A stretch of 64,000 bases of DNA, from NCBI GenBank assembly GCA_047495785.1, contig JBLDXI010000017.1, forward strand, positions 2,170,001 through 2,234,000, read 5' to 3'. Shown piece by piece: positions 24,862 through 28,006 of the stretch. The DNA is from Lepidodermella squamata. Lineage: Eukaryota; Animalia; Gastrotricha. The notes beneath the pieces were generated by a model that worked only from the letters and a program-made list of their open reading frames with translations, had not been told where the DNA came from and searched no databases. Position numbers and translations under genes: made by a program. The stretch's first letter is position 1; every line of letters begins with the position of its first letter.

Positions 24862-27800
24862 TCACTTGAGTCCGAACCCTTCGCCGCATTCTGTGATTGC
24901 CTTCAGCAAACGTTCGCGTAATACTTCGTACGACGGGTAGCTTGCCAGTTCGATGCGGTTGAAACAAGTATGCTGAAATTTTAAAATAATTAAATTCAGA
25001 GCTTGACCCAATTATTATCAATTTAAAAAAGAAATCTGGCTTATCAACAACAAAAATCGGAATACAGGAAATGCGGATAATTAATCTGATGGGTTAATTT
25101 AGCAAGGGAAGGAAGCGAAACTCAATTAAAGAACAATAATGGCCTTTCTCCCACTCCTAGTTTCGGACATTTTTCAGGTTTCTAGTAAAAACTCGGAGCC
25201 TCGGAATCAGCTCGACCTGAAATTATTTTTCGAACCTGAATTCGAAAACTTGCAGCTCAAACCACTGTAATCTGGTCAATAGCAGCGCTGTTCTTTACAT
25301 GCAAAAAGTCGACAATATTGTGTCTCATGGTCGGATTTAGAATAACAGCCTAATAACAGCAAGATAATCACCTGTACAGGTGAACTGGAGTGTTTGAAGC
25401 CATAGATCATTTAGGCGCATTAGATTACCCTAAAAAACGGCCGATAACATTTTTTTAAATTTTAGTCGCCAGATTTTCGTGTTTTTTTGCCGAAAAGCGG
25501 AACGCAACAGATGATTGCACCAATAAAATTGCTCCTCCCAGCAATAAATTTTCCGATTTTAATGCGATTTTGGCTTTTTCTTTTCATTTTCGATACTACG
25601 GTGCCCCCATGATATGGGATTTCTATCATACCAATTTGGTAACATCAGCTAGCTGGAACCATTTTCAATGATAGCTTCCAAAACTGCTGATATCAGAAAA
25701 ATCACCAATTTGTCAAATCGATACCGGAAATCGATATCGGCTCTGCAGGCTGAATTATAATTCGTAAACTGACCACGAAAACTCAGAAAATCATGAAAAT
25801 CAGAAGAACCAAAAAAAGCTGGGAAATTCCGTAGCTAGAGCCTCAAATTTCATTCTGGAACCCTAGATTTATGGTACCTATCCATTTAGCAAACCCCTTT
25901 TTATTTTAAATGTGAACTGAAATTGATTTTGACAGAATCGAGAAGTTCAACTTACCGCTGTTGGTAGCTGATCCACAGGTCGGTCATTAATTATGAGTAC
26001 TGTGAACTGTTGGCCGCCATCGGAGCCGCAAAACCCGCCCAGCGGGACGCGATCCGACCCGGTGACAAATACCAAAAATTTGACGCGATCGTCATTGCTG
26101 AACGACTGCAACGCCTTCCACAGCCATTGAACTTGCGGCGTGTCCCGCGAGCAGTTGTGGTAAAGTGCATAAGTCTTAATATCGCTAATATCAACAGTTT
26201 GATTGCCGCATATCATGAGTTCAAGTTCTTTCGGGCTGAAATCAGCCAGCAAATTTTGAGGAATTACCGAGTGAAAGCCCTCGAGAAACGTTTCCAACTG
26301 CTCCGATATTTCACCTGTCATTTTCATTAAACACATCGCCTCTATGTATTGCTTCACATTGTCCGGCGTAACCGGCGTGTCACGGTCAAATGGCGGCAAA
26401 TCTGTTTGCCGTAAAATTTCACCGAATGCAGATATTTCCGAAACGAAAAATAAATCCGCCTCTTTCAACTCATCCGGGCTTAATTTAACAAGACCAGCTA
26501 TGTTCAAGTAAAGGTGTGAGTCGTCAAGTTCCAAATCACTGGCCTTGACCTCTTGTCCGAGCATCTTTTTGTAGATGAACTGCGCGAAAAAGCAGTGAAG
26601 CGGAACCTTTTCGTAAACAGCCTTCGCGACTAGAAGGCCGGCAAATTTGTAATATTGAAGGTAATTCGCCTGGACAAAGGCTGATTTTTCATCCAGGGTG
26701 TAAGCAACTCCGTCGGATCGAACCTTCCGAAATAGCGCGTAATTCGGGTTCAGTAACTGCCGGATAATTATTGTGAACCATTCTTTAAGCAAACCGCCGT
26801 AATCTTGGCCATCTTCATCTGCGAAGCTAACTTTAAAGCGAAGTTTCCACTTCTCAGACGAGTGCAGGATTAACTGATCGACGGAATTTTCTAAAATATT
26901 AGGCCGCGATACGCTGAATTGAACAGATTCAGCCTGTTGGCGGCGTAATTCTTCGCGAGTTGGCGAGCCGTATAATTTTTCGTAAAACGTATTAATTTTA
27001 GCATCAAGATTAGGATCTGACGTCCGAATCGGAGGTCTGACGGACGGCGGGCTGGTCATGTCACTAGCAGCAAGTTGCCGCCAGAAAATTCGGCGTAATA
27101 TTGTTGGCAGAACAAATTCGAGGGCTAAAATAACCAGAGACACAACTCCGAGCATCGCGATCATCAATTTGAATGGATAAATGTAATCATTCCACAAAAC
27201 GTCGCTACAGGCCTGAAATTCAATAAAATTAGTTGAGCTAATAATAAGGAAGATGATTATACATTTCTGCATAGATTAGAGCCTTTCGGGCACAGCGAAG
27301 TCCGATTTCGCGTCGAGTTGGAGTACACAAACGGCGGAAAGTCTTCGCTGCAAACTGTTTGAAAGTAAACTCCGCAACACCCAGTCTAGAAAGACGATTC
27401 AGCTTTAAAGGGGAACCTTTTTTATATTTTACCTCTTTGTAACCAAAAGCTAGAAGACCATCTGAGCTATTATTTTTTACTTCAAGCTCGAGATCGCCGT
27501 CCAAACTTGGGGAATCCTAAACAACTCCCAAAATTGATATTTTCAGTTGTTGACCTAAAAATTCTCACATTTAAGGAGGCTGGTAAAGCGATCGATATGC
27601 CGAGTAATACCGCTGCGGCGAGAACAAATAGAAACTGGAAAAAGGTTCAGTTATAATACGCTAAATTTCTTGTGGTTTGGAATATACCCATAAACAAGCG
27701 TTATTACACCTAGGCGGGGGTTCGACGACCCTCCACGAATATAGGCTGTGAATAGCCAAAAAGGTGCCGATGAACACCTGTAATACTGAAGCCATGACGA

Positions 27801-28006
27801 GCAACGCCAGCTCGCTGGTAAAATACGACTGGACAGCTTGGTTGATTAAAAAGAAGGATAGCCAAAAGCTGAGGAAAGTTATAACGCCCATGGCCTATGA
27901 ATCACAAAATTGTGTTCAGGAAGACTAATTACCTGTTGGAAAAACTTACGATGAAGACAAAATGCAAAATAATTTGCGTTAGGAGTATTTTCCTCTCCAG
28001 CAGCAT
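24862..28006 (-). CDS. Tetraspanin-HECT E3 ubiquitin ligase fusion (7 exons, 634 aa)
   Basis: Exons 28006-27950, 27894-27688, 27634-27569, 27516-27433, 27385-27263, 27212-25956 and 24972-24862, all phase 0. Four TMs; EC2 with TGCCG and four more Cys; HECT motifs [42 protein letters not shown]|HTCFN...[12 protein letters not shown]. Confidence 0.9.

Follow-up and report, generated by a model that had tools for sequence, protein, structure and literature searches.

We analysed a 64,000-nucleotide stretch of the genome of the gastrotrich Lepidodermella squamata (contig JBLDXI010000017.1, positions 2,170,001 to 2,234,000), hereafter the window, which harbours a gene coding for a tetraspanin-like membrane module continued, in the same polypeptide, by a HECT ubiquitin ligase domain resembling that of HUWE1. 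The fusion gene has seven exons on the minus strand (28006-24862), all in phase 0 and with GT..AG borders, and codes for 634 amino acids (aa) plus the stop codon. The same seven-exon, 634-aa model had been put forward in the original prediction, made from the letters of the window, and it was reproduced when the exons were assembled, every border being GT..AG. There is an in-frame TAA three codons upstream of the ATG. Exon 6 is a single uninterrupted open frame in the list of open reading frames (ORFs), and the fourth transmembrane segment (TM4) and most of the HECT domain were predicted to lie together in it (27212-25956). The frame is indeed unbroken, and the corresponding exon of an ortholog from a second species, described below, is likewise continuous.

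The HECT domain of the fusion protein is complete. Exon 6 residues 148-419 matched positions 2-271 of the Pfam HECT profile (PF00632, E 9e-67), and exon 7 continued this match seamlessly through positions 272-306 (E 9e-11); the ortholog matched positions 1-306 (E 6e-81). The LPTAHTC(601)FN loop and F631, the -4 Phe in GFGLK, are present in both species. The protein has therefore what defines a HECT ligase at its end, a catalytic C-lobe Cys that precedes the C-terminus by approximately 30-35 residues, and the -4 Phe. The piece of the ortholog from TM4 to the end was modelled with AlphaFold2 (AF2) as a confident two-lobed HECT domain (predicted local distance difference test, pLDDT, 84; predicted template modelling score, pTM, 0.73). 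In Foldseek searches with the ortholog model, HUWE1 HECT structures were at the top (5e-34) and HUWE1, NEDD4 and Rsp5 matches extended down to approximately 1e-25, so that the N-lobe/C-lobe fold was recovered by both methods. In the AF2 piece, one long helix (residues 2-49) comprises the end of the large extracellular loop (EC2), TM4 and a juxtamembrane stretch. It is followed by tether residues 49-66, modelled with low confidence (pLDDT approximately 45-57), and by the alpha1 helix (67-82). A flexible tether of approximately 17-25 residues is thus predicted between TM4 and the HECT domain.

Two public runs contain this stretch, and 5,501 bases of the window were compared with both. Run X2 is DNA and covers all of the compared stretch. 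Run X1 differs from the window at 1-2% of the positions and its depth was zero in an intergenic stretch (28080-28447) and in an intron stretch (25136-25503); consequently, X1 behaves as RNA of a related strain or species. Spliced X1 contigs with CT..AC ends (GT..AG on the coding strand) joined 24972/25956, 27385/27433, 27516/27569, 27634/27688 and 27894/27950, and at 27209/27264 X1 skipped 54 letters and kept 4, which corresponds to the 50-nt intron 5. All six introns are therefore spliced as modelled. The exon with the catalytic Cys (HTCFN, 24972-24862), originally placed about 980 nt further downstream, is part of the transcript, since the 24972/25956 joint crosses an intron of 983 nt. The passage from the TM4 region to the HECT domain is covered by two X1 RNA contigs (26023-27032 and 27003-27144). 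The 5' untranslated region has at least 49 nt (X1 contig to 28055), and the 3' untranslated region is transcribed at least to 24735. In the coding sequence, the window and X1 differ in 14 codons synonymously and in 7 nonsynonymously (all conservative), with zero frameshifts or stops. This pattern, with the frame intact, indicates purifying selection.

A database search with exon 6 returned six proteins only, the best of which (P0001, encoded on contig L001) was 55% identical. This protein is the ortholog: it is approximately 55-60% identical and its whole architecture is the same. The upstream ORF of L001 starts with MLLERKILL, identical to the N-terminus of the fusion protein, and has the same hydrophobic segments, CCG motif and Cys pattern. 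The downstream exon carries the last EC2 Cys, TM4, an identical 10-residue junction motif and a complete HECT domain with HTCFN and the ...GFGLK end. The ortholog has two introns only, compared to six in the window, at the positions of introns 1 and 5. Its intron 1 is in frame and stop-free, so that ORF callers translate it and lengthen TM1 by 20 spurious residues. Identity between the two species was approximately 41-42% in TM1-3, EC2 and TM4, compared to 62% for the spacer and 60% for the HECT domain; the six EC2 Cys are all kept, as are the two Cys of the loop. The same gene was present in a second independent metagenome assembly in the same neighbourhood, which consists of Vps16, FUT8, SH3, fusion, CBM_14 and Cys-loop receptor genes with no adjoining tetraspanin paralogs. 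The continuity of TM4 and HECT in three independent assemblies from two species excludes, for practical purposes, a misassembly or a joining of genes. Together with the transcription and splicing of the gene, the conserved TM4-HECT ORF bears out the earlier claim that the fusion is not an artefact of gene joining. The features of the locus and of the related loci are listed in Table 1.

Table 1. Coordinates of the fusion gene, its local paralogs, the ortholog introns and the ordinary HUWE1 gene (positions are those of the window unless a contig is given; TM, transmembrane segment; EC, extracellular loop).
Feature	Position	Strand	Description
Exon 1	27950..28006	-	aa 1-19: start codon, short cytoplasmic N-terminus MLLERK, start of TM1
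Exon 2	27688..27894	-	aa 20-88: remainder of TM1, short EC1, TM2, intracellular loop with conserved RCNxxC
Exon 3	27569..27634	-	aa 89-110: TM3
Exon 4	27433..27516	-	aa 111-138: first part of EC2, helical, ..DGLLAFGY..; conserved across paralogs
Exon 5	27263..27385	-	aa 139-179: EC2 core, CCG (141-143), Cys 150, 170 and 177
Exon 6	25956..27212	-	aa 180-598: Cys 181 (last of EC2), TM4, spacer, HUWE1-type alpha1 helix, HECT positions 2-271
TM4 coding part	27099..27176	-	approximately aa 192-217, then the 10-residue juxtamembrane motif; hydropathy core 195-213
Cytoplasmic spacer	27021..27098	-	approximately aa 218-243, from the membrane to the HUWE1-like part
Intron 6	24973..25955	-	983 nt; splits HECT exactly between ...LPTA and HTCFN...
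Exon 7	24862..24972	-	aa 599-634 and stop: HTCFN, catalytic Cys601 (codon 24964-24966), -4 Phe631, GFGLK end
Neighbouring stand-alone paralog	28523-29552	-	253 aa, same exon plan, cytoplasmic tail of approximately 30 aa; modelled from X1 RNA joints
Paralog 2	31986-32894	-	236 aa, ends a few residues past TM4
Paralog 3	34494-35676	+	281 aa, tail of approximately 75 aa
Paralog 4	60099-61148	+	220 aa, most canonical-looking member; tail of a few residues
Ortholog intron 1	L001 4363-4422		60 nt
Ortholog intron at the intron 5 position	L001 4888-4949		62 nt
C-terminus of the ordinary HUWE1, same genome	G000:C20:462696-466682 (L003)		intronless open frame of at least 865 aa, end SEGFGFA

Next, the origin of the HECT domain was traced. 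In a search of solved structures, human HUWE1 was the best match (4e-80) and NEDD4-type ligases came next (5e-55). The alignment between the ortholog and HUWE1 starts at the alpha1 helix (P.FDAKI..FY against PDFDVKRKYF, at approximately residue 3994) and reaches the last residue. The C-terminus of the window protein, ...ECGEGFGLK, aligns to ...ECSEGFGFA of HUWE1; the resemblance of the ending to the HUWE1/Tom1 C-terminus, noticed at first sight, was in this way confirmed by alignment (...EC.EGFG..). In a maximum-likelihood tree, the two fusion proteins formed a pair with 100% support (Shimodaira-Hasegawa-like approximate likelihood ratio test, SH-aLRT) on a very long stem of 1.9 changes per site. 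This pair was nested within a clade of 30 HUWE1 sequences (100% support), one of which is the HUWE1 of this genome; this is the grouping that had been expected. As judged from these alignments and from the tree, the HECT domain of the fusion is derived from HUWE1.

The ordinary HUWE1 of the same genome (L003, ...LDFDVKRRYFRQELE...SEGFGFA) is 46% identical to the fusion HECT domain. Its own HECT domain is up to 78% identical to other HUWE1-type sequences of the tree, in contrast to the fast-evolved copy in the fusion gene, which is single copy in this genome. Members of the HUWE1/Tom1/UPL1 subfamily have a giant N-terminal architecture with DUF908, DUF913, UBA/WWE and DUF4414 (PMC3673628). The fusion shares with them the alpha1 helix and the HECT domain (approximately 42-46% identical) and the ...EC.EGFG.. 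ending, but it lacks the solenoid of approximately 3,500-4,000 aa that holds those domains, it is membrane-anchored, and an ordinary HUWE1 exists separately. In its 634 aa, only the four-TM module and the spacer lie upstream of the alpha1 helix. The protein is therefore a carrier of a HUWE1-derived HECT domain rather than a HUWE1 ortholog, the true ortholog being L003.

Hydropathy gave four cores in the N-terminal module (residues 18-36, 50-68, 87-105 and 195-213), in agreement with the four transmembrane segments predicted originally. The small extracellular loop (EC1) has approximately 11 aa and EC2 approximately 85 aa. N-glycosylation sequons are confined to EC2 (residues 161 and 165, in exon 5) and basic residues flank the predicted cytoplasmic sides. 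This is the tetraspanin layout of four TMs, a short EC1, a large EC2 and, in the orientation predicted, cytoplasmic termini. EC2 also contains the CCG motif and four further Cys, one of them shortly before TM4; all of these are kept in the ortholog and most of them in the local paralogs. The canonical tetraspanin PxSC motif was not seen in the fusion, which has LCPKGS in its stead. Compared to the tetraspanins (PF00335; CD81, CD9, CD63), the likeness comprises the four TMs, the short EC1 and large EC2, CCG with six Cys including the one before TM4, an acidic residue in TM4, a juxtamembrane Cys and remote profile homology. The differences are that the fusion is too divergent for Pfam, that its EC1 has only approximately 11 aa, and that its tail is a domain of approximately 390 aa and probably an enzyme.

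The profile homology was obtained with a family alignment of five members, including local paralog models, compared with seven canonical tetraspanins of the same genome. The hhalign probability was 93% in local and 94% in global mode (199 columns) and 96% when paralog 4 was included (199-211 columns overall), and the CCG motif and the Cys before TM4 were in register in the local alignment. Reversed and 30 block-shuffled controls reached at most 15%. Moreover, both the hidden Markov model (HMM) of the canonical tetraspanins (2.8e-6) and that of the remaining five family members (2e-17) matched paralog 4, and this provides a transitive link from the local family to ordinary tetraspanins. An ESM-Atlas feature search gave PF00335 clusters only (score 0.87) and serves as a lead only. 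In the AF2 model of TM1-EC2 without TM4 (pLDDT 70, pTM 0.35), TM3 continues as one long helix (66-110) and the Cys-rich head has low confidence. A protein search with the N-terminal ORF of the ortholog returned only itself. These comparisons support the assignment of the N-terminal module to a very divergent, lineage-restricted branch of the tetraspanin superfamily, backed by profile comparison and not by a curated model.

The window contains four further genes of this family, all with the same exon plan as the fusion and with the common pattern ..GLL.(F/Y)(G/S)(Y/H).. CCG .. C .. C .. C .. C. The nearest of them (28523-29552) was transcribed and spliced in X1 and is identical to the N-terminal part of the fusion at 72 of 219 positions. 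The local paralogs are 25-33% identical to the fusion, compared to 48% for the ortholog, and none of the four was matched by PF00335 in an exon-wise search of the genome. The junction between TM4 and HECT has no intron in either species, and the HECT region of the HUWE1 of this genome is also intronless, in line with the 3' end of HUWE1 having been duplicated in part, or retrocopied, and joined to the final exon of a tetraspanin-like gene. The copied piece would have landed in that exon or been read through from it, and this birth would predate the split of the two species. Thus, the fusion probably arose from the 3' end of HUWE1 joined to a member of the tetraspanin-like family before the species split. 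The capture of a HUWE1-type HECT domain by one copy of a local array, as proposed originally, agrees with the presence nearby of paralogs with the same exon plan; however, the capture is old, as the ortholog is only approximately 55-60% identical and does not lie beside paralogs.

To look for precedents, 1.84 billion representative proteins were scanned. P0001 (485 bits) was the sole match aligned from the TM4 region. The next matches, at 275 bits or less, were HUWE1-type proteins of 3,000-4,600 aa with a C-terminal HECT domain, aligned from query residues 69-97 approximately. Shorter HECT matches (450-800 aa) were considered as possible further fusions and rejected, being HUWE1/NEDD4-type fragments or small HECT proteins without TMs. 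A scan of JGI metagenomes with the junction motifs gave 528 pattern matches, none of which was confirmed as a further member. Full-text literature searches combining tetraspanin with HECT or fusion found nothing relevant, a search for membrane-anchored HECT found no paper, and a pan-eukaryotic survey of HECT proteins mentions neither 'transmembrane' nor 'tetraspanin' (PMC3673628). The statement of the original prediction that no tetraspanin-HECT protein had been described was thus upheld, with no precedent in the literature searches and only the ortholog as a TM4-HECT match among the scanned proteins. A new domain architecture built from two known families is confirmed; it is expressed and conserved, and its function is what we infer below.

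Several known systems resemble this architecture in part. NDFIP1/2 and yeast Bsd2, Ear1 and Ssh4 are small multi-pass proteins that bring the HECT ligases NEDD4/Rsp5 to membrane cargo. They are an analogy only, without homology: in those pairs the contact is between a PY motif and WW domains and the ligase is of NEDD4 type, whereas in the fusion a peptide bond links the two parts and the ligase is HUWE1-type. The MARCH family and GRAIL/RNF128 are membrane-embedded E3 ligases that ubiquitinate the cytoplasmic tails of surface proteins, and tetraspanins are among the targets of GRAIL. They differ from the fusion in their RING chemistry, which has no thioester intermediate, and in their other TM modules. 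To our knowledge, tetraspanins are regarded as organisers without enzymatic activity and with short tails, and animal HECT ligases reach membrane cargo by means of soluble domains (C2, WW) or separate adaptor proteins. A membrane localisation as such is documented for E3 ligases of the MARCH family (PMC13310625). Furthermore, PfUT of Plasmodium falciparum is a HECT ligase of 3,893 aa located at the endoplasmic reticulum/Golgi and, with its four putative TM domains, predicted to be integral to the membrane (PMC4022464), so that an integral-membrane HECT ligase is not entirely without precedent. PfUT and the fusion are both HECT ligases with four predicted TMs; however, PfUT has an armadillo-like substrate-binding region, is not a tetraspanin and is apicomplexan rather than animal.

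Overall, the locus holds a real, transcribed, conserved, single-copy animal gene whose product is a four-pass protein of the tetraspanin superfamily with a tail made of the last approximately 390 residues of a HUWE1-type protein, and we consider it probable that this product works as a membrane ubiquitin ligase. The C-termini of tetraspanins are cytoplasmic and normally short. With a cytoplasmic C-terminus, and with the sequons and six paired Cys all in EC2, the HECT domain is expected on the cytoplasmic face, a few nanometres from the bilayer. There it would take ubiquitin from a ubiquitin-conjugating enzyme (E2) onto Cys601 and transfer it to membrane proteins laterally associated with the tetraspanin module, at lysines of their cytoplasmic tails, and the tagged proteins would be endocytosed, sorted into multivesicular bodies or degraded. 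Since none of the substrate-binding modules of HUWE1 is present, the choice of substrate would have to come from the membrane module, by lateral contacts of its TMs or of EC2. A selection of surface clients by way of tetraspanin microdomains or the EC2 loop, as put forward in the original prediction, is plausible given this topology. The protein would then be a hard-wired version of the pairs of adaptor and HECT ligase represented by NDFIP or Bsd2 with NEDD4/Rsp5. From its sequence, the most likely role is the ubiquitination of the tails of associated membrane proteins, of itself, or of both. It is possible, and we propose it tentatively, that the protein is the first member of an animal class of integral-membrane HECT ligases whose clients are selected laterally by a tetraspanin module instead of by a soluble domain or a PY adaptor.

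The observations that weigh against a working ligase on a tetraspanin module are found in the HECT sequence, in the Pfam and fold searches of the N-terminal module and in the form of the RNA support, and each of them is given here with the alternative that it favours. The alternative that survives best, although we regard it as fairly unlikely, is that the HECT domain acts mainly on its own protein. Auto-ubiquitination of the tetraspanin module or of the spacer would be a sorting signal that carries the protein and its companions into multivesicular bodies or extracellular vesicles, instead of a specific tagging of clients. The short tether between TM4 and alpha1 and the absence of a substrate-binding domain are in line with such self-modification, as is the retention of the alpha1 helix, which in the 3H1D work reportedly restrains the autoubiquitination of HUWE1. 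By contrast, the identity of approximately 41-42% in EC2 and the TM helices, with all Cys kept, suggests that contacts with partners matter.

We judge it unlikely that the HECT domain is a pseudo-enzyme, or one with a shifted function, serving as a membrane-tethered module that binds ubiquitin or an E2. Across 120 HUWE1/TOM1-type HECT domains, 80 alignment columns reach an identity of at least 95%. Of these near-invariant columns, 63 are kept in the window protein and 58 in the ortholog; hence 17-22 of the 80 are changed. Thirteen of the columns have changed in both proteins, including the proline of DLP-x-Y, which is Ala in both. With such changes, E2 use or activity may differ or be lost, and the stem of 1.9 changes per site that leads to the fusion pair points in the same direction. 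Against this, both species have, in spite of their deep divergence, retained the two-lobed fold, the -4 Phe and the catalytic Cys with its LPTAHTCFN loop, and the HECT domain, with 60% identity, is the best-conserved part of the protein. The retention of the catalytic loop argues against a loss of activity. The long stem and the shared substitutions at otherwise invariant sites suggest that E2 use, chain type or regulation shifted once the fusion had formed.

It is also quite unlikely, in our opinion, that the N-terminal module belongs to an unrelated, lineage-specific family of four-TM, Cys-rich proteins that merely resembles tetraspanins. The Pfam Tetraspanin model (PF00335) did not match the 194-aa TM1-EC2 ORF of the ortholog at E values up to 10, it gave 70 matches elsewhere in the exon-wise search of the genome but zero within the window, and Pfam gave no Tetraspanin match on the short exons of the window. 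Foldseek searches (pdb, atlas and VIA wide) with the partial, low-confidence TM1-EC2 model returned generic helical matches only and were uninformative, so that they do not count against a tetraspanin fold. However, the hhalign probabilities of 93-96%, far from those of the controls, with CCG and the pre-TM4 Cys in register, the double match of paralog 4 and the exclusively tetraspanin clusters of the ESM search all speak for a divergent tetraspanin. The 'full tetraspanin' of the original prediction therefore stands as regards the four TMs, CCG with four further Cys and the profile homology, and not as a textbook member of the family; likewise, of the proposed HMMER check for Tetraspanin plus HECT, the HECT domain gave a full-length match and PF00335 no match. 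Finally, it is extremely unlikely that the contig was misassembled or that the model joined two adjacent genes: the RNA support for the seven exons is a chain of overlapping short contigs rather than one molecule or spanning read, so that the RNA check proposed originally succeeded at six of six introns but not on a single molecule, whereas TM4 and HECT share one ORF here and in two independent assemblies of another species, X2 DNA contigs and X1 RNA contigs cover the junction, and the 10-residue junction motif is identical in both species.

As a conserved natural weld of a tetraspanin and a HECT domain, the protein would demonstrate directly that ubiquitin ligases can be positioned at the membrane by a tetraspanin module. 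With 634 aa, the protein offers a compact system for two questions, namely how partners are chosen in the tetraspanin web and how an isolated HUWE1-type HECT domain behaves at the membrane, and it could be a template for engineered, membrane-restricted ubiquitination tools. The evolutionary record is clear to an unusual degree, with the capture of a giant gene's 3' end, a burst of divergence and, after it, stable conservation.

Intron 6 is absent from the ortholog and from the HUWE1 of this genome and thus looks like a lineage-specific intron gain within the HECT coding region. It carries a dispersed repeat with a core at approximately 25647-25775. In the genome, 416 first-look candidates of this repeat were found, 40 of which were scored at 75-87% identity, and the X2 DNA depth was approximately 6775 at the repeat compared to approximately 85 elsewhere. 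Low-depth X1 contigs (depth 4-5) join opposite strands within intron 6 (25559/25663 and 25888/26002); these joins are probably a repeat-derived or hairpin artefact outside the mRNA of the gene.

In the exon-wise search with PF00335, a weak match (E 0.02) in a frame of 923 aa (G000:C13:1332500-1337500, L026) was followed up as a candidate second tetraspanin fusion and rejected, since it is a P-type cation ATPase; weak exon-wise matches of this model in this genome can therefore be spurious. A search for the Rfam SL1 RNA, which would have pointed to a nematode, gave no match among the 50 of 31,633 candidates that were scored. Some tetraspanin matches occurred in pairs with identical scores (G000:C84:70693-71376 and C99:28477-29160; C1:3361372-3361656 and C1:3453930-3454214, the latter approximately 90 kb apart), which may be uncollapsed haplotigs or recent segmental duplications.

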